This document shows positions 4,307-27,408 of a stretch of 64,000 nt of DNA, piece after piece. The notes under the pieces are model-generated. The model searched no databases, had not been told where the DNA came from, and saw only the letters and a list, made by a program, of their open reading frames with translations. The DNA is taken from contig JAWQFM010000029.1 of assembly GCA_033442325.1 (NCBI GenBank), forward strand, positions 710,847 through 774,846. Reading direction: 5' to 3'. This DNA is from Salpingoeca rosetta. Taxonomy: Eukaryota > Protista > Choanoflagellata. Every line of letters starts with the position of its first letter. Within the stretch, counting starts at the first letter, position 1. The position numbers and the translations under genes were made by a program.

Positions 4307-4403
4307 GGTGTGTGTGTGTGTGTGTGTGGGTGTGTATGTGGGTGTGTGAACGGGGCGCGTGAATACTTTGCGTGATCGTCACATTCATGGTTGTGTCGGG
4401 GTA

Positions 4404-5039
4404 ACAAACGGGACAATGGGCAATGATACATCCAAAGGGAAAAAAAGGGTGGACATTGTGTGAAGAACATTTGTGACACACAGCAACGGCGTNNNNNNNN
4501 NNNNNNNNNNNNNNNNNNNNNNNNNNNNNNNNNNNNNNNNNNNNNNNNNNNNNNNNNNNNNNNNNNNNNNNNNNNNNNNNNNNNNNNNNNNNNNNNNNNN
4601 NNNNNNNNNNNNNNNNNNNNNNNNNNNNNNNNNNNNNNNNNNNNNNNNNNNNNNNNNNNNNNNNNNNNNNNNNNNNNNNNNNNNNNNNNNNNNNNNNNNN
4701 NNNNNNNNNNNNNNNNNNNNNNNNNNNNNNNNNNNNNNNNNNNNNNNNNNNNNNNNNNNNNNNNNNNNNNNNNNNNNNNNNNNNNNNNNNNNNNNNNNNN
4801 NNNNNNNNNNNNNNNNNNNNNNNNNNNNNNNNNNNNNNNNNNNNNNNNNNNNNNNNNNNNNNNNNNNNNNNNNNNNNNNNNNNNNNNNNNNNNNNNNNNN
4901 NNNNNNNNNNNNNNNNNNNNNNNNNNNNNNNNNNNNNNNNNNNNNNNNNACAAACGGGACAATGGGCAATGATACATCCAAAGGGAAAAAAAGGTGTGGA
5001 CATTGTGTGAAGAACATTGTGACAACACAGCAACGGCGT
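4404..5039. repeat. About 89-bp direct repeat flanking an N gap (4404-4492 and 4950-5039); probable unmerged contig overlap
   Basis: acaaacgggacaatgggcaatgatacatcc...cagcaacggcgt occurs on both sides of the gap and differs only by small, mostly homopolymer-type indels. Confidence 0.75.
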
Positions 5040-7098: not shown

Positions 7099-7427
7099 AC
7101 CACACTCACGCGTCTGTTGTTGACGCGAAGCGGGGCTTCCGTCAGTTTGCTGTACACGCGCCCAAGGCACGCGCGCATGCCTGCAGGCAAGCTTGGTCGG
7201 GACAAAATATCGTGTCGCAGCTCACCACCCCGGAGGTTGATGGCGTGCACGGGCATTTGCAGCAGCCGCAGCTGCGACGGTGTGCGAACAAACGCCGTGT
7301 CGTAGTCTGAACGAATGCGGAAGAACAAAAGGAGGAAGAGGGAGGGGCGTGGAAGGGCATTATCGTGTGATGACGGAAAAACCAGGATGAAGGAAGATGG
7401 TACTCTGTGCGTGTGTGTGTGTGTGTG

Positions 7428-7490
<63 letters not shown>

Positions 7491-8147
7491 TGGTNNNNNN
7501 NNNNNNNNNNNNNNNNNNNNNNNNNNNNNNNNNNNNNNNNNNNNNNNNNNNNNNNNNNNNNNNNNNNNNNNNNNNNNNNNNNNNNNNNNNNNNNNNNNNN
7601 NNNNNNNNNNNNNNNNNNNNNNNNNNNNNNNNNNNNNNNNNNNNNNNNNNNNNNNNNNNNNNNNNNNNNNNNNNNNNNNNNNNNNNNNNNNNNNNNNNNN
7701 NNNNNNNNNNNNNNNNNNNNNNNNNNNNNNNNNNNNNNNNNGACAGGGTTGAGGGGTGAGCGACTGCGATGGAAGCATTGGCAGATATGGCGCATTGTCA
7801 ACACCATGTCGACACCATGTTATTCATAGAACACTTCAAACAGACATCAAACGGTCATAAGACAGCACCATCATGGCAACATACAACACACAGATGCACA
7901 CACACGCACAAGCTACGTCTTCCTCACTCTCTCCGTCGTTGTCCTGGTCAAACTCCTCAATCATCGCCTTAAGCTCATCATCGGGAATGTCCTCTCCCAA
8001 TTCCCTGTTTGTGACGCAAAGCAACGCGCAGCCGCGGTATGAGGAAAGTTGGGGAGGTGAATGTATCTCGTGGCATAAGCAAACGACACAGACGAGCAGC
8101 CACTCTCTTGCGGAAATACACACCACACTCACTCGCACACACACACA

Positions 8148-8819: not shown

Positions 8820-10214
8820 CGGTGTGTCAGGAAACTTTAGACAAACGAGACACCATGTCAAACGCATTAGAATAGACGAGCGATGTGCAATCATCACACC
8901 GAACAACCATCCCACCTTGCTGTCTGCCAGTCCACATACTTCGCTGACGGCGGTGCGCACGCGCGCGTGTGTGTCCGTGTGCGCGTCGGGAAATGTGGCA
9001 GCGATTTCCTGCACGCGGACGCGTGTTCTTCGTCGCAAGCTCAAGCTAATGCAATGTGTGGAGGAGGGTCATGTGGTGCTGGTTATCAGTCCAAGTGAAA
9101 AGCGAGGGTGGACAGGCACGGGCACGCAGAGGTAACATGCCCGTGTACACATCTCACGGTGGAAATTACGCAATGCAACACAGCACACACCCACACATAC
9201 ACAACACACGCGCGCGCCCACACCCACACATGCAAACACACACACACACACACATGAGCTCACACAGCACACACAACACACATAACACAGCACAACGCAC
9301 ACACACGTACACACCACACCTCGTGCACGCGTGCTTTGAGAGCGCTGATTTCGTCCTTGTTGTCGCGTGTGTGCTGTGACATGGTTTGCATCCTCGCCTC
9401 CAGACGCACACGCAGGTCGTCAATCTGCTGCTTGATGGCGGCGTCGGTGACGTTGTTGTTGAGGGAGATGAGCGCCCGCACACGTCGCACCTCCACCCCA
9501 TCCCGCACCTCAACCTCGCTCCCTTCCCCGCCATCCAGCGCAATGCCCAGCAGAATCTGGCTTGGCTGCGGGTGCGCGCTCGCCTGGGCAACACCTGCGG
9601 GCCACTCAGCACTGGCAGCACTGGCGTGATCAGCGTTGCCTGCATGTACGGTGGTGCTGGTGATGGTGGGCATGCGAGACGGCTGCTTGCTCTTGCTGCT
9701 GTTCTTGCTGGTGCTCGAGCTGTTGCTGTTGTTGCGACGCCTACCATTGGCGCTGCCAGTACTAGCCTTCCTCTGCTTGCCACCATCATTGTCGCCGTGG
9801 CTGGTGGTGCTGCTGCTTCGCTCTTTCTTGGCGCTCGTGCTCCGTCGCCTGCTGCTCTGCCGATCGCCAGGAGTGACAGCGGGGGTGGCGTGGGCGCCGA
9901 CGTGCTGCTTTGAACTCGCAGCATCGCCCTCGGGTGCTTCAGTCGACTCGACACGTGACACCTGCGTTGATAAGTACGACACGGAGTAGTGGTTGTCAAG
10001 CACCGCGCTCTCCTCAACTTCAATCATCACCCATTCGTCGTCATCATCATCGTCGCCGTCGTCGTCACCATCATTCTTGGGCGCAGTTGCATCTGCCTCA
10101 GCAGTTGACGCAACGGTGCCTGCTTTCGTTACCGATGCAGCTGTCTTGTTACCATCACGATGATCAGAAGAAGCCGTGTCACCACCGCCATCCCCACCAC
10201 TCTCATCACCGAAC

Positions 10215-10302
<88 letters not shown>

Positions 10303-13242
10303 AGTCGTCGTGGATGCTGAGCAGTTCAAACTCTGCGGCTGCGTCCTCCAGCGAGACCGCATACGGCCCCGTGTACAGCAGATCCCCCGTCTTGACAGGA
10401 CCCCCGACCTTCGTCTCGATTGTGCTGTGTGCCATTCATCGCACGTGCCGTTGCGTACATGGCGTGGGATTTGGGTGTCAGTGGGCGAGATTGTGTGTGT
10501 GTGTGTGCGTGTGTGCGTGTGTGCGTGAGTGAGTGAGTGTGCACGGGTACATGAGTGTGCATGTGTGCATGTGTGCATGTGTGCTGTATCATTGAGCCCC
10601 GGTACCCTGCACAGCGTGATTGGTGGTAACAACCACGTCTCGTCGCCCGTTCACGACATTCAACAACACTGAGTGGTGTCTGCAGCAAATACATGCACAC
10701 CACCACCACCACCACCACCACCACCACCACCACCACCACCACCACCACCAAGCTGTGTCCACCAGTGCGTGACATAGACTCACCCGAACATGCACACGAG
10801 GTCGATGTGCTGCACAGGGAGTGACTCCACTTCCCGGCGATTGGCGCTGGCATGCCGGTGTGTGGTGGAGTGATGGTGTGGTGAGGTCGAAGGTGAGGTG
10901 TTGTCAGGAAGCACAACTTCACACATGCACGCACGACATGGCAATAGCATTTCACACACACGCGCGCACACAAGCCGATGGAGAAGAATGCAACAGTATG
11001 CGGTAATGCGTACATGGTGTGTGCTGATCTGCTGATGACACCGCACACGACAGCACCGGCAACGTTCTCGCGGCGCAACCGCTCAATGACCAGACGCCCG
11101 CCCGCAGCCGAGAACAGACCAACAACATCGCCCTCCTCAAATGACCTGCATAACACACACACACATGGGCGGGTGTATGCGGGTGCGTACTTTGGGTTGA
11201 ACGACACAAGTTCACACCTGAATGCCTTGCAATGATAATGTGTGCACCATACACACATACACACGAGCACATACACGAGCACACACACGAGCACAGCAAC
11301 AACAGCACCACCAAGAAACAAAGAAGACACATCTGGGTGTGCGCGTACTCTGATGCGCGGAGTTTGGGGAAGAGGTAGGCAATGTCGGCACCCGTGCTGG
11401 TGAGATCGGCCCCGCACTGAAAGCACTTGCCTGTGCAGATGAGGATGGGTGAGGCAGTGGTGGTGTTGGTGATTGGTGAACCCGAATACACACACACACA
11501 CACATACACACACACAATGACAAGAACACACACGGCACAGGGGCAAGAAACACAAGCGCAAGTGCACGCACTAGCACGACAGCCAACTCACAGCTGACGT
11601 TGAAGACGACTTGGAGCATGCCGCAGGAGGGGCAGTTTGCCATCCACACCTCTATCGACAGCAGTTCGTCAAGTGATGCGTGTGATGGCACTGGTGATGG
11701 TATGATGGGTGCGTCGGGTGACATGCCACTTGTGGTCGTGGTTGTGGCTGGCGAGAGCCCGCTTGTTGCTGCCGACGATGGTGACAGCCCTGCCCCAGGT
11801 GATGATGCGTACGATGGCTGCGGTGGGTGGGCTGGCAAGCCCTCTGAAAGCGTGTGTGCGAGCGAAGGTGGTGATTCTTGTGGCGACAGCGGTGAGAGGT
11901 GCTGTTCTTGCCACTGTTGCTGTTGTTGATGGAACTGTGGCTGTTGTTGCTGTTGTTGTTGGAACTGTGGCTGTTGTTGCTGCTGTTGTTGGAACTGCTG
12001 CTGTTGTTGGAACTGTGGCTGTTGTTGGATGGATGCTGGTGGGCTGAACGCCAGACCAAACGCGTGCGCACCGTCCATCTCCTCCTGCAGCTGCGGGTCG
12101 TGGAGACTGCCAAAGTTGATCATGTCTGCACCGACAAGCTGCATGCCGGCCTGTGGCGACGGCGTTGCGTCCATCGATGACGACGAGTGTCCAGATGGCG
12201 AGCCAACAACTGACCATTGGAGAGGAGGGGGAGTTGGGTTGTGTGGTTGAGTGCGTGTGCGGTAGTTGATTGTGTGAGTGTTGTTGAGTGTACGTGAGAT
12301 GTTGGCGCTATGATTTTTGAGTGCAAGAGCGTAACAGCGGCACTGATCAAGTGGTGAGGCGGAACCCTCTCGCAGTCAATCAACATCACACATGATCAAC
12401 ATGACATCACCAGCCCTGTACACCAATGCCATTGTCGCGACGAGCACTGCCATGAACATGCGCACAGCCGCAATCACGCCATCACTCAATCACGCACCAC
12501 CACGATTGCCACCGCACCTGGAGGGATGTCAAATATGTCTGACCATCCTCGTGGCACCGAGGCGCCTGCCGTCGTCGTCAGCATCTCGGGGTCGTTTGCA
12601 CCTCCGCCCAGCATGTTCGGGACCGAACCGCCCATCCCACCGTCAGGTGGCGGCTGGCGTCCTTGCTGGTGGTGGTCGGGGAGAGTGTATGGCTGTGTCG
12701 TGTGCGCGCGTCCGTGTTTCTGCGCGCGTGTGCGCGAGTGGCGAATCGGTCCGGTCCTCCGCGGGCTCCGAGCACTGGACGACGACGACGACGACAATGA
12801 AGACGGCGATGCTATTAATGCCGAAAAAGGAGGGGGGGGGAAGGGTGTGATCACGGGTGCATGCGTGAGTATGTGTGTGTGTGCATTTGTGGTTATTGTG
12901 TTTGTGTGTGTGTGTGTGCGCATTGTGTGTATTGTGTTTGTGTGTGTGTGTGCGTGCGCACATGTGAAGGTGAAGTCGCGTTGCTTTTCTCAACAATTCT
13001 GTTGTCACGTGACGAACTACGTTGCTTACCGCCGTGCGACACTGATTGCGGCAGATGTTGTTGTTGGGGCTGGTGGTGCTGCAATGCCGCTTGCAGATAC
13101 GCGTCACCTGCAGGTGACGCGCAAGCAATGTGTTGTTATAGTCGTCGATGGCGGGTGTGAAAGGGAGGCAACCAAGCTCAGGAGGGAACACGCACATGCC
13201 TTATCAACAGCACAAAGAAATGAGCACAGAGGGCACACACAC

Positions 13243-13281
<39 letters not shown>

Positions 13282-14255
13282 ACTGCACCTTGGTCTTTGA
13301 GGAGAGCCGCAAGGTCTGCCAGGTCTCCGGGCTCACACGTGTCCGCATCCATGCTGCCATTGACATAGACCGCAAACCCCATCCTCCGGCACTCGCGCAC
13401 GAGTATCTGAAACACCTCAGCCTCGTGTTGGGGCGGCACAGCATAGTGATATGGATGCACGCACACGCGGTCTCTCTTCGCAGCACCATTTCTCCTTTGG
13501 ATGTTGTGTGAGTGAGTAAGTGAGTGAGTGAGTGAGTGAGTGAGTGAGTAAGTGAGTGAGTGAGTGAGTGTGTGTGTGTATGTGTGAGTGAGTGAGTGAG
13601 TGAGTGAGTGATTGAGTGATTGAGTGATTGAGTGAACTTTGCAAGCAAACTGTTCTGCAAGGGCAACCATTCCTGCGCCAAGCCGTGCATGCTTACTTGA
13701 TGCCGTAATCGCAGCTGTCGATGAGCTTCCACGTGGCTACAAGAAGCTCGTCGGTGATGGGAAACCGGTGGCCCAACAGCTCCTTGAAAAAAGCGTGTGT
13801 AGACGTCCGTCGCTTGGAGTCTACAACCACATGGTACAAAGTGCATGCAGCGAAGAGCGGAAATGTGTTACGACAGCGCCTCAGCTAGTCAGCCGGGCAT
13901 TCGTTGATGCAACAGGCAAGCAAGACACAATGTCAAAGGCAGTAGCCAACTCCACAGGCACACCCACAATGAGGACAACCATGAGCGCAACACAAACACA
14001 AGCACAGGCGTGGTGTCTTGGCAACGTGCCTTTAGTGCTGTTGAAGCGACCTCGCGTGTGAGTGCAGTTGTTCTTTGGGCAAGTGGGGCACGCAGCTTTG
14101 CATTCCACAAAGAAGTGGTGCTCGGCCACCTGGAACAAGTCCATGGCATCGTTCAATGTAGTGCACACAAGTGCCTGAGCAAATTTGACGTCTCGCTGCT
14201 GGGCTTCTTTCCACAGAGCCCAATTCAGGCTCAGTCCCCCAAGTTGAACACACAT
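5350..14255 (-). CDS. Paralog A: MH1-like Zn domain, Q-rich region, C4 Zn knuckle, Peptidase_G2-like chaperone domain, coiled coil and FGF/fascin-like beta-trefoil (3' end uncertain)
   Basis: Exons 14255-14030, 13820-13697 and 13494-13289 give ...CPTCPKNNCTH...RRTSTHAFFKELLGHRFP...SCDYGIK...VCVHPYHY. Downstream exons give WMANCPSC, CFQCGADLTSTGADIAYLFPK, FEEGDVVGLF...CGVISRSA, VCMFG, KVGGPVKTGDLLYTG, LLGIALDGG...NNNVTDAAIKQQIDDL and GRYLCATVDGDLIAS. These are collinear with paralog B. Confidence 0.75.
7928..8004 (-). other. Isolated centrin-3/Cdc31-like exon (EF-hand 4 region) inside an intron of paralog A
   Basis: cag|...|gtgag-bounded 77-nt exon encoding ELGEDIPDDELKAMIEEFDQDNDGE, close to centrin-3 ELGENMSDEELRAMIEEFDKDGDGE. 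No other centrin exons are recognisable nearby. Confidence 0.7.
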
Positions 14256-14719
14256 CTTGGCGCACAACAACGTGCTTCCACTTCTTCTGCGGCTTCTTCT
14301 GCTTCTGCTTGCAAAGCCAACGACTTGCGTGGAGCGTCGGCCACTTTGGAAAATGATGCTGGCTGCACAAGCGCTTGCCTGTCTCTTGTGTTGGCCAGTA
14401 TCGACGATCACCTGCGGTGGTGGTGGTGGTGGTGGTGGTGGTGGTGATGCTGCAGGGCAGTGCTGCTGATGGTGGTGGTCGTCGGGTGTTCGTGTTTCGG
14501 TGCGAGGGTGCGTGCGCGTGTTGTTGACCTTGTCTGCTCTGGTTCGGTGGTCCTTTCCCCTTCTCTCCTTTTATCCTTTTGCTTCTTGCTTTGCTTTGTC
14601 GCTTGTTTGGGTTGTGGAAAATTCATGAATGTCAGCGCTAATCGTACACTCGACGATGACACAACTGGGTGTGTGGTGCGTGCGTGTGCACGCGCGCTGT
14701 TGTTGGTGTTATGTTCCAG

Positions 14720-19270: not shown

Positions 19271-21702
19271 ATACACATGCACGTGAGCGTGTGTAAGTGT
19301 GAGAGGAGAGAACAGAAGAGGACTGGCCGAGACCACAAGGATTGCAAGTGTACAACGAGCAAACACTCGAGCAACCAGTCGAGCACGATTCAACTTACGC
19401 CACGCGCTGGTCGCTGCCGCAGAGAAGAACAACACGCGTGTATGTCCCGTACTGTCCAGTGAATGTCACCCGCTGCAAGGCACACACACACAATGTGGCG
19501 ACGAGTGCATGATATGAGAGCGTGTGAGTACTGGGGGTGAACAGCCAAACACACCTACAAACACAGACATGTCGCTGCAGGAATGCCACGATACAACCGT
19601 CCCAACACAAGCGCACACGCATCCAAGCACACGCGCAAAAGCACGAATGCACAATCACAAACGCACACAATTACACCATACACCACACACACACACACAA
19701 ACGCAAAATCACGCACCGTTGTCTCTGGCATGAAGCGAAGCATGCGTTGCGATGAAAGGGAGACGATGAAGCACCACATGGCCGGCAGGTCGCGGAGTGT
19801 TGGCTTGCGGAACAGCCGCAGCCGCGCCAGTTTGCGCGCCGGCTGCGCATGGAGCAGCAGCCCGCCCGTCGACGGTATCACGCGCACAGAGTTGGAACCT
19901 GACGTTGGGAAGGAGAGAGGGGGAAGGAGGGGGAGGAGGGGGACGCGAGCAGTGTTGTGTGGTATGGTGTGTGGGGTGTGATATGGTGTGTGGGGTGTGG
20001 TATGGTGTGTGGGGTGTGAGGGCCGTGCAAGGGTGGCAGTACCACATTCGCTATGTTTGCGTGACTTGGGTGTTTGTGCAATGGTATGCGGAGTTGTGCT
20101 GGTGAATAGGGACACAAGCCTTCCCCCAAAACACATTAAGCACGTGATGAGCAAGAGCCCGGTGCGGGACTGACTTGTGACGGAGGGATGACGATGAAGC
20201 GATGGATGGCGCACCTGCTGTGCCCGCTCAACCTGACACACACGCACACACAGGACCATTGTGATCAGGAAAGAGCGGTGCCAAGTGCGAACAAACAACA
20301 AACCGCAACAACTGCACCATGCAAGCGCTTAACACCACACACACATACACATACACATACACATACATAAACAAACACCCCCTGCCGGTACCTTCTTGAG
20401 GCGCTGTAGGATATTCTCCTGTGTGCGCACAATGCCGTCCACGCGCTGCTTGAGTTGCGAGTTGAGGTCGTCAATCTGCTGCTTGATGGCGGCGTCGGTG
20501 ACGTTGTTGTTGAGGGAGATGAGCGCCCGCACACGTCGCACCTCCACCCCATCCCGCACCTCAACCTCGCTGCCTTCCCCGCCATCCAGCGCAATGCCCA
20601 GCAGAATCTGTTTGGACCACGGCGAGGTGCGCATGGCCTGGGCAACACCTGCGGGCCATGCATCCGCTGACGACAGCGACGTCAACACGCCCCGCTTGCG
20701 AGGTGACACGCCATCACCAACGCCACTTCCAACACCACCATCAGCAACATCGGCGTCGTTGCCGGGGGTGCTGCTGCGGTTGGCTGCTTGCTGCTGGGTC
20801 GACACCCTGCCATGCTGGGGTGCCAGCGGCGCCGGGGAGGTGGAGGGGGCGGATGTGGACGCGGACATCGACGATGGCGGTGAGGATGAGGACGGCTTGG
20901 TGGCAGCATCCTCCCGGTTGGTGCCGGTGTTGGTGCCGGTGTCGGTGTTGGTGTTGTTGCTGTTGCTGTTGCTGTCAGCTGCAACATCGGCCACGGCTAT
21001 CTCCTCGTATCCAAACGCTGACGGCGGCGCCCCAGTGTCCGATGACACCGCCTCCTTCTGCGTCAGCTGGTGCTGCGTGTCTGCTTGCTGTGTTTGCTGG
21101 TAGCGAGGCGAGGTTGGGCTGCTTGCAAGCACGAATGTCGTGCCTTGGGTGGTCACGTTGTCATACTCGCCGCTGCCGCGCCCGCCATCAAACCGGTGGC
21201 CGGCAACCCGTTCCAGCTGGCGCCGTTTCAGTTCATCCCGAGCGGAGCCTCCACCAACATCGCCGTCGTTGTCATCATCTTCGCTGTCATCATCGTCGTT
21301 GTCGCTGCTGCACACCACCTCGTCGTGTCCGCTGCGTGTCAGGACGGGCTGCTTTGTGCGTGCTGCCGTCTGCGTGTGTGTGTTTGTGTCCGTGTCGGGA
21401 CGGCCACCGCCGTTCACGAGCGAGGGCGTGGCCGACGACGACGACAGCGCCGGTGGCGAGCGGCTGTTGCCTGCAGGCATCTCGCCCACAGCTGCACCGG
21501 ACGTGGCGTGGGAGAGCGGCGTGGACGTGACAGAGCCATCGTCCTCGTCAGTCACGTCGTCATCGTTATCGTACGGCCCCGTGTACAGCAAATCGCCCGT
21601 CTTCACCGGACCGCCGACAAGCACATGCACGATGCTGCCGTGCGGTGGCGGTGGTGGTGGAGACACGGGTGTGAGTGAGGGGGTGGGTGGGTGGTTGCGT
21701 TA

Positions 21703-21784
<82 letters not shown>

Positions 21785-22303
21785 AGTTGTGCACAAGGAG
21801 GGACAGGAGCAATGTGCTGGTTTGACAGGCGTGAAGGAGTGGCGGAGGAACTCACCCATACATGCAGACCGTTTCCACGTCAAAGGTGTTGCGCACTTTC
21901 GCGTTGTTTGCATTTGCACTGCACAAACACGTGTGCAAGCAGCAACGGACAGGTGAGAAAGCAGTGGCAAGTGGAGTGGGGGCAGTTGTCGTGATGCACA
22001 ACAGCGCAGCACTTTGATGAAAGCAAGTAAGAACACGTCACAGAGGCAACCAATGGTGTTAACGAGCAGTTGCTCCCTCAACAAAACCGAACCAAAACCA
22101 CCATCACCACAATGACCACCACCACAAACACAACCACCCTTGGCTGCGTACATGGTGTGTGCTGAGCGGGTGATGACGCCGCACACGACGGCGTCGGCGA
22201 CATTATCGTGGCGAATCCGCTCCACAGCCAGACCGCCGCCCGCAGCCGCAAACAGCCCAACGACCACACCTTCCTCAAACCGCCTGCACAGCCACATGTG
22301 TGT

Positions 22304-22339
<36 letters not shown>

Positions 22340-22731
22340 ATTGAGCGTTAGCAGCGAGTCACACCAAGCAGAACGTGGCCAGCTCACACAAGTGAATTGC
22401 TACTTTGCCAGAGACACATGCACCACCACCACCGCCACATGCAGCAACAGCAAACAGCAAACAGCCAGCATCCAACACCAAACAGTAGTGCGTACTCGTA
22501 TGCGCAGATCTTGGGGAAGAGATAGGCAATGTCGGCGCCCGGCCGCGGTGCCGGCAGCGGCATGTTGCACTGGAAGCACAGCTGCTCAACCTCTGTGTAA
22601 GGGGGAAGGAGGATGGGGAAAGGGTGTGGTGATCGTACGCGGGGGGTGGGATGATGGTGAGTCATGAAAGGAGGAAAGAAGGGGGGGAGAGCGGAGCTGT
22701 TAAAATTTCAACGCGACCAAATGCCAACACA

Positions 22732-25435: not shown

Positions 25436-26542
25436 TGTGTGTGTGTCTTCAACACGCTAAAGTTGGTGCTGATCCGTAGGTAGTGGCAGGACTCTTATAA
25501 TAGACCAAACATCTCCTGTAGTCTATTTATGGTAAAAGAATACATGCGTATTGCTATTCCTCCGACTTGTGTAGGAGATACCTGCTGCTTTAATGATTAG
25601 TTATTCCGTCAGTTTATGCGGTCTAGAAAAGTTGCCGTCACCTTTAGATCAGTGTTGTCAATCGTCTCGTACCGAGACTACCTTATCCTCGCTTGCTTAA
25701 CCCTGGGTTCCGCTCGTTTCCGTCAGAGCGGGTGAGTACAACAGTCGGCACTCAACACTTTACAGAAGTATCCTTCTCACGAGAAGCAGTCGCATAAAGG
25801 GACTTCACGTGGATGTGCGTGTGTGTCATGTGTGTGTGTCATGCACGTGTCATGCACGAGCCATGCGCGTGAGAGCAACTTACAAGCGTCAACAAGGGCC
25901 ATGCAGAGCTTGTAGTACATGCCGGCCTCGTAAGGAGTGTGCTCAATCTGCACCGCACGACACGATTGGAATGTGTTTGTTTTGGAGGGAGGGAGGAGCA
26001 GCAACCGTCGTGGGAAACATCATGCATGAGGCACCATGCGGTGTGTTGACGCACACACATGCGTAGCAGCAGCAACAGCAGCAGTAGCACCAGGGCATGT
26101 GGGGGACAGACAAGCACGCACACACAAGCACAGACAGACATACACACCCACACCCACACATACCCACACATACACACACACACACACATGCAAACACACA
26201 CACGCCCGCACACATCAAATACACAAGCAACACAAATCAACAGCAACAACAACAACAACTGACGGTGAATCCTGCGCGGGAGCTCTCCTTGACGAGGAGG
26301 TCGAAGAAGAGGCGCTCGTCCTCCGGGTCCACGTGGTAGTGGTGCGGGTTGATGCAGATGGGCGCCAGCCCGTTGGGGCCCGGCGGGCCTTTGCCCTGTC
26401 CGTTGCCGCTGTTGGTGGTAGTGGTGGTGGCATGGTGTGGCGTAAGGATCAACGGTGCGGGAACGGAAGCGGTCGAGTGGCATTGAACACACCATGCGCG
26501 CGCACGCGCGCGCACGCACGCACGCACACACACACACACAGG

Positions 26543-26580
<38 letters not shown>

Positions 26581-27151
26581 GAATGCCGTATTCGCAGGAG
26601 ATGAGGCGGCGCCAGGAGTTGTGAAGGAGGTCGTCCGTGATGGGATACCACAGCCCAAGATGCACGCGGAAGAAGGCGTGCGTCGACACACGCCGCGTCT
26701 TACCCCCAGCTGACGGCGGTGGCGGTGATGGTGGGAGTGAACATGGGAGTGAGTGATGATGTGGTGAATATGAGTTCAAGCAGGACGCGCGGCAGTGGCA
26801 GTGCAAACGGCTGAGGACACGTGTGAGCGTTTCCATCACACCCACATGGACATGCTCACACACACGTTCACACACGCGTGTACGATTGTTTGGGGCTCAA
26901 CGCACATGTGCTGGTGTACAGGCTGGAGATGTGTGTGCAGTAGTTCTTGGGGCATTCCTTGCACTTGCCGCGGCTAATCTCTGGGAAGAAGTGTTCCCTG
27001 AATAAAGATTACAAATAAGGCGCGCAATGAGTGCCTGATAAGTGGGGCGATGCCTTGCGTTGTACACATGACCGCACACAAACACACACACACAGACACG
27101 CACACACGCACACACGCACACGCACACACGCACACGCACACGCACACACAA

Positions 27152-27184
<33 letters not shown>

Positions 27185-27240
27185 CACACACAAACCAAAC
27201 ACGCACAAACCAAACACGCACAAACACACACAAACACACA

Positions 27241-27284
<44 letters not shown>

Positions 27285-27408
27285 GCATGGGGAACATGTC
27301 GAGTGCCTCTGGCCATGATGAAGCCTGCAGGGCCTTGAGACAGCGACGGTCGCGGCCAATAAACTCGGCAAGGTTGGACGGGTCAAACCCCGTGATAATC
27401 ACAGACAT
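15309..27408 (-). CDS. Paralog B: MH1-like Zn domain, poly-Q region, C4 Zn knuckle, Peptidase_G2-like domain, coiled coil and about 2 FGF/fascin-like beta-trefoils
   Basis: Exons 27408-27284, 26997-~26907, ~26710-26580 and ~26409-26265 give MSVIITG...KCKECPKNYCTH...RRVSTHAFF...SCEYGIR...ICINPHHY. A large Q-rich exon spans ~25275-23800. Later exons give WGHCPSC, CFQCNMPLPAPRPGADIAYLFPK, FEEGVVVGLF...CGVITRSA, VCMYG, LVGGPVKTGDLLYTG, a coiled coil and GQHYLCFDEDGNPRVSTTITPACIF. Likely stop at 15309. Confidence 0.78.
15825..15982. repeat. Tandem duplication of an 80-bp unit in an intron of paralog B
   Basis: aatcactgtgggtgtgcacacgacgcgacaatcaccgacacgc...aaaacatgaac occurs twice, with a partial third tail. 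Confidence 0.8.

Follow-up and report, generated by a model that had tools for sequence, protein, structure and literature searches.

Introduction

Does a choanoflagellate gene whose first domain ends in a Smad-type Cys/His motif carry a genuine MH1 domain, a distant relative of MH1, or an unrelated domain resembling it over a few residues? The question is raised by a locus of Salpingoeca rosetta at positions 13289–14255 of the window, as the whole 64 000-nucleotide stretch of DNA analysed will be called here (assembly GCA_033442325.1, contig JAWQFM010000029.1, positions 710 847–774 846 of the forward strand). A first-pass annotation, made from the sequence with no database searches, had proposed that this locus specifies a Smad/NFI-type MH1-like domain, and had regarded MH1 as an animal innovation. 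The latter notion is outdated: MH1 without MH2 was reported in choanoflagellates in 2018–2019, MH1 and MH2 being found in separate proteins of these organisms and assigned a choanozoan origin (Richter et al. 2018, PMC6040629; Lopez-Escardo et al., PMC6792448). An MH2 domain fused to a myosin has also been described (PMC3942036). That MH1 is a degraded His-Me endonuclease is established, following Grishin (2001) as cited in PMC5714182. The analysis below identifies the locus as encoding a conserved N-terminal domain (∼185 residues) in a gene that belongs to a set of three old paralogues, and weighs what this domain may be.

Results

Three paralogous genes share the domain and its introns

On the minus strand of the window, the ATG at 14255 and three modelled exons yield a spliced frame of 185 open codons (paralogue A; Table 1); position 14255 is the A of this ATG, and 13289 is exactly where exon 3 ends. 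All the peptides quoted in the first-pass annotation were found inside this frame, including those that cross exon boundaries (K|D and K|R). Conservation within the family is highest in exon 2. Intron 2 is filled by a simple repeat of the GAGT/GT type. Intron 1 has a GC donor (14028–14029) in a near-consensus context (AAAG|GCACGT) and a TTGTAG acceptor; the use of this GC donor is supported by the other two paralogues, B and C, which carry GT-AG introns at the same position and in the same phase. A phase-1 donor (GTGCAG) lies directly after exon 3, at 13288, indicating that the gene extends further downstream, and the same phase-1 donor closes the domain models of all three copies.

Table 1. 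Features of the three-copy family and of the open reading frames compared with it (window positions unless a locus is named)
Feature	Position	Strand	Description
Paralogue A, exon 1	14030..14255	(-)	ATG 14255; 75 codons + 1 base; N-terminal helix-like region, then invariant H..F..C-x2-C-P-K-N-x-C-T-H cluster, then S-T
Paralogue A, intron 1	13821..14029	(-)	209 nt, GC-AG, phase 1
Paralogue A, exon 2	13697..13820	(-)	R-R-x-S-T-H-A-F-F ... P-I-T-D-E-L-L ... W ... S-C-D-Y-G-I
Paralogue A, intron 2	13495..13696	(-)	202 nt, GTAAGC...AAAG, phase 2
Paralogue A, exon 3	13289..13494	(-)	Smad-type knuckle V-C-V-H-P-Y-H-Y, then conserved helix (invariant Glu, F..LV.E), then G-F-x-V
Possible downstream exon of A	11215..12209	(-)	Long Q/S/P-rich open frame; phase-compatible pyrimidine-rich acceptor at 12209
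Paralogue B	25884..27408	(-)	5 exons: 27408-27284, 26997-26906, 26709-26580, 26408-26264, 25947-25884
Tandem duplication	9263-11570 vs 20332-22707	(-)	Module lying downstream of A and of B
I-PpoI-like ORF	L004:1014-2366 (= G000:C30:791513-792865)	(+)	Single exon, 450 residues; same genome
MH1-only ORF	L005:2605-3324	(+)	Single exon, 239 residues

Searched in all six frames, the 55.4 Mb genome yielded exactly three copies of the domain: A, B (in the same window, 13 kb away) and C, which lies on another contig (C10, locus L001). The models of B and C have five exons each, A lacking two of their introns; both introns of A match their counterparts in B and C in position and phase. The three proteins show 37–56% amino acid identity, with dN values of 0.40–0.74 and a dS that is saturated (>2.3 or not computable), and when the three regions were compared locally the matches were confined to the exons. 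A, B and C are old paralogues under purifying selection. Nine Cys or His residues are invariant among them (H47, C56, C59, C64, H66, H84, C112, C128 and H133 in the numbering of A). The only matches of the 55 Mb genome to the back-translated pattern C-[IV]-[NH]-P-[YH]-H-Y are three, those of A, B and C, while the reversed control pattern has none.

These data also bear on the idea that the locus is non-functional, a set of chance open frames or a decaying pseudogene. The need for a GC donor in one intron of A would agree with it, but each of the three copies has retained an open frame, a start codon, its splice sites and the nine Cys/His residues despite the saturation of dS. In addition, the fraction of sampled 31-letter words of the region 11200–14300 present in eight sequencing runs was ∼0.47–0.50, and a value of about one half in several runs is that expected if only exons are represented, which is weakly indicative of exon-only, RNA-derived reads. 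A non-functional locus is therefore scarcely credible; the existence of three copies, a motif unique in the genome, shared introns and a dN well below dS confirm that the reading as a gene goes beyond chance.

The similarity to MH1 lies in the C-terminal knuckle

The exons of the three copies were scored separately against the Pfam MH1 profile (PF03165; gathering cut-off, 25 bits). Exon 3 reached 14 bits in A (E = 0.06), 12 bits in B (E = 0.25) and 15 bits in C (E = 0.029); the HMM check proposed at first pass thus ended below the cut-off, with the exons scored singly. MH1 was nevertheless the sole Pfam family matched by exon 3, in A, B and C alike. The match covers positions 86–100 of the 103 in the model, i.e. 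only the C-[IV]-[NH]-P-[YH]-H-Y segment: paralogue C matches the C-[VI]-N-P-Y-H-Y knuckle of MH1 exactly, A differs from it by an H in place of N, and B by an H in place of Y. A profile of exon 3 built from A, B and C was also compared with solved structures; the best 14 matches were all Smad MH1 chains (E = 0.05–0.12), with alignments that span the knuckle only. Exons 1 and 2 produced no Pfam match and no MH1 signal; profiles of exon 2 and of the Cys-rich terminal part of exon 1 matched no solved structure, Smads included. Of the Smad-type MH1-like domain originally proposed, the C-terminal knuckle thus stands, being backed by the only Pfam family and the top 14 structures, while scores of 12–15 bits, about half the 25-bit cut-off, and front two-thirds with no detectable similarity leave the remainder of the domain unsupported as an MH1.

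One explanation would be a canonical MH1, whose score would exceed the Pfam threshold when the exons are joined, and hence an instance of the choanoflagellate MH1-only proteins already reported (PMC6040629, PMC6792448). Such proteins do exist, and the Pfam scores come from exons taken separately. Exons 1 and 2, however, contribute no score at all, a read-through of exon 2, intron and exon 3 of paralogue B gave no Pfam MH1 match, and a six-frame scan of the genome for MH1 returned nothing at E ≤ 10 (in a scan in which the controls were silent too). This explanation appears quite improbable.

Structure prediction was applied to parts of the domain. The AlphaFold model of the B read-through (exon 2, intron and exon 3) had a pLDDT of 40, and that of A exon 3 alone (four sequences) a pLDDT of 66; within the latter, a strand, the knuckle and a 17-residue helix follow one another at pLDDT 74–81. 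When the A exon 3 model was compared with the PDB using Foldseek, only generic strand-helix-strand matches were obtained (E > 0.3). Given these pLDDT values and the lack of a meaningful structure match, both partial models were discarded as evidence on the fold.

Relatives were sought with short pieces of the domain in collections that may omit S. rosetta's own records, so that the blanks refer to other organisms only. The exon 3 profile found no relative outside the S. rosetta genome among 1.84 billion representative proteins; two repeat proteins that it matched there were judged spurious. Word-seeded protein searches with C exon 3, the Q-rich exon of B and C exon 1b found nothing in other organisms, a first metagenome scan with exon 2 returned nothing, and the ESM Atlas offered no usable match to exon 3.

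Comparison with a genuine MH1-only protein

A second metagenome scan led to an ORF, L005 (Table 1), that has no introns and is a clear MH1: its protein scored 51.2 bits against the Pfam profile and matched Smad5 and Smad1 (E = 4e-11) across the whole domain, and it lacks MH2. An identical protein was found in three metagenome assemblies (also as L006, L007 and L008). The neighbouring genes (Tim10, CFA20 and a TTC21-like gene) indicate a flagellated protist as the source, probably an uncultured one. A second ORF begins at the stop codon of L005.

An HMM of the S. rosetta family scored L005 at 20.3 bits (tblastn among candidates, 2e-6), and hhalign aligned the two with a probability of 95% over 128 columns. 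When the knuckle and tail were removed, the front part, where the N-terminal helices and the DNA-binding beta-hairpin of MH1 would be expected, scored 9.1, against 11.4 ± 2.2 for 200 shuffles; conversely, shuffling the front of L005 left the full score unchanged (55.7 ± 1.8 versus 54.4). These controls place all detectable similarity to L005 in the last ∼25 residues, which comprise the knuckle and the post-knuckle residues ..P..Q.RF common to L005 and the family, in a comparison whose profiles hold only one to three sequences and thus have low sensitivity. In the reverse search of the S. rosetta genome with L005, exon 3 of paralogue B ranked first, but with E = 0.78.

The shuffling results also bear on the main alternative, namely that the domain is an unrelated, lineage-specific Cys/His zinc domain whose knuckle either converged with that of Smads or is a short shared element and not part of a shared fold. 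Measurable similarity to MH1 is limited to those ∼25 residues, the front two-thirds do no better than chance when set against the MH1 of L005, the AlphaFold model of exon 3 looks like a generic strand-helix-strand unit, and a language-model search with exon 1 leans loosely towards clusters of the H2C2 type and not towards MH1. On the other side, paralogue C has seven consecutive residues identical to the motif of Smad1/5; the upstream Cys, Pro and His occur in the same order and at near-identical spacing to Smad; the true MH1 of L005 shares the residues that follow the motif; and the comparison, made with profiles of one to three sequences, has low sensitivity. Taken together, an unrelated zinc domain seems possible though somewhat unlikely.

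Candidate metal ligands

The L005–Smad5 alignment gives the spacing of Smad5 as Cys-21-His-10-Pro-14-Cys-12-Cys-5-His. In the family, the candidate ligands are spaced 21-12-16-23-5 in paralogue B and 20-12-16-16-5 in paralogue A, an order and spacing that, as read from the aligned residues, fit MH1. The assignment of the first ligand is ambiguous because, in the MAFFT alignment, the first ligand of L005 falls opposite the second Cys of C-x2-C. The four Cys-Cys-Cys-His ligands announced at first pass are accordingly borne out only in part: candidate ligands, an invariant Arg-Arg and a Smad-like spacing are conserved, while the identity of the first ligand is equivocal. All three copies have an invariant Glu eight residues past the His ligand (H133).

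The exon 1 search mentioned above (ESM Atlas; 14031–14255, minus strand) returned as its nearest matches unnamed clusters, some of them with an integrase H2C2 zinc domain and sharing few features with the query. As a lead only, this would fit a separate zinc site formed by H47, C56 and C59 plus either C64 or H66.

Sequence downstream of the domain

In every copy, a phase-compatible, pyrimidine-rich acceptor leads into a long low-complexity frame. The frames are Q-rich in A and B, while the frame of C includes a basic stretch along with runs of Ser/Pro and has an acidic-hydrophobic end. Such an arrangement is typical of transcription factors. We infer the link between domain and low-complexity frame from the acceptors, which are of a common kind. 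Scans of downstream open frames revealed no MH2, in agreement with the first-pass annotation, nor did a six-frame genome scan for MH2 in which the control genomes were silent as well.

Paralogues A and B lie within a tandem duplication on the minus strand (Table 1). The duplicated downstream module, which matches nothing in Pfam or PHROGs, is 77–85% identical between A and B, compared with only 37% for their MH1-like domains; this difference could reflect very unequal constraints, or gene conversion, or the presence of separate genes. Runs of N occur in the window at about 4400–5000 and 7400–7750.

Discussion

The reading that we propose, and to which we give an even chance, is that the domain is a strongly diverged, non-catalytic zinc module of the MH1/I-PpoI type, putatively DNA-binding, that heads Q-/S-/P-rich proteins resembling transcription factors. 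Its last third would consist of a knuckle (C-x-[NH]-P-x-H-Y) that holds zinc as in MH1 and I-PpoI, with a helix behind it; ahead of the knuckle would come a further group of Cys and His residues (H, C-x2-C, C-x-H), and the zinc module would bind DNA at the head of a transcription-factor-like protein. Zinc binding is suggested by the invariant Cys/His residues and common descent with MH1 by the identity of the motif to that of Smads.

A bolder extension would make the family a surviving intermediate between the I-PpoI-type His-Me nucleases and the MH1 domain of animals, one already employed, in a unicellular relative of animals, to bind DNA at the front of Q-rich transcription factors. Like MH1, it would have lost the catalytic His; it would have kept the second zinc cluster and the beta-beta-alpha helix, on which an invariant acidic residue lies. 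We consider this scenario unlikely.

If the fold proves to be MH1-like, the family would represent a second, far more diverged form of MH1 outside animals that keeps features lost in Smads (the helix after the knuckle and the extra Cys/His cluster), and would help to trace the path from a homing-endonuclease fold to a transcription-factor domain. The gain would be modest, since choanoflagellate MH1 without MH2 has already been published and the evidence concerns ∼25 residues. With a different fold, A, B and C would be a small, lineage-specific group of zinc domains of ordinary interest.

Comparison with known systems

The I-PpoI-type homing endonucleases (PF05551; PDB 1A73) share with the family a C-x-N-P-x-H zinc loop followed by a helix, and two possible zinc sites. 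In I-PpoI, the catalytic His stands two residues before the second Cys ligand and the metal-binding Asn at +9. The family differs in lacking the S-H-x-C catalytic block and any PF05551 match (in this genome the profile matches a different gene, on contig C30), in having an invariant Glu in place of that Asn, and in consisting of three diverged copies that are intron-bearing nuclear genes. This Glu lies on the helix predicted after the knuckle, which Smads lack, and may correspond to the Asn of I-PpoI, if the predicted helix is correct.

The gene on contig C30 is a single-exon I-PpoI-like ORF (Table 1), in which a G-S-H-L-C-H block is followed by C-V-N-P-A-H-L and, nine residues later, by an Asn. 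It scored 23.1 bits against PF05551 (E = 9e-5; cut-off, 27) and may be an intact His-Me nuclease; a 2017 survey lists the PF05551 family in fungi only. The profile of the S. rosetta family showed no similarity to this ORF.

It might be asked whether the family itself is an active His-Me (beta-beta-alpha-metal) nuclease, perhaps a selfish one, with the invariant S-T-H and acidic residues as its catalytic centre. The invariant His of S-T-H does precede a P-I-T-D-[DE] block that is likewise invariant, the Glu eight residues past the His ligand is conserved in all copies, and an I-PpoI-like ORF is present in the same genome. At the position equivalent to the catalytic His of I-PpoI, however, the three copies have D, I or G, which makes nuclease activity of the I-PpoI kind unlikely; PF05551 does not match the family, nor does the family profile match the I-PpoI-like ORF; and paralogues that number three, are old and diverged, contain introns and have Q-rich tails are unlike a mobile element. 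An active nuclease is thus highly improbable.

The DNA-binding domain of NFI/CTF has a knuckle of the C-V-Q-P-H-H-I type. The C-I-N-P-H-H-Y of paralogue B resembles it, although no NFI-specific Pfam family was matched. With the choanoflagellate MH1-only proteins (PMC6040629) and with L005, the family has in common an MH1-type motif, the lack of an MH2 (for A, B and C, as far as the scans of open frames go) and a non-animal setting; L005 differs in being clearly MH1 throughout (51 bits; Smad5, E = 4e-11), which the A/B/C family is not.

There are also parallels with Smad MH1 itself (PF03165; e.g. PDB 1OZJ, 3KMP and 6TCE). The family departs from it in its extra invariant H / C-x2-C / C-x-H cluster, in the greater length of the Gly-rich loop that leads to the knuckle, in the conserved helix and strand beyond it, in front two-thirds with no detectable similarity, and in showing no MH2 in the downstream frames scanned. 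Nonetheless, the C-[VI]-N-P-Y-H-Y knuckle is reproduced residue for residue in paralogue C; ∼63 residues precede the candidate first ligand and the catalytic His is missing, as in Smads; and the upstream Cys of C-[DE]-[YF], the aromatic-Pro pair and the His-hydrophobic-hydrophobic-aromatic block follow the same order with similar spacing.
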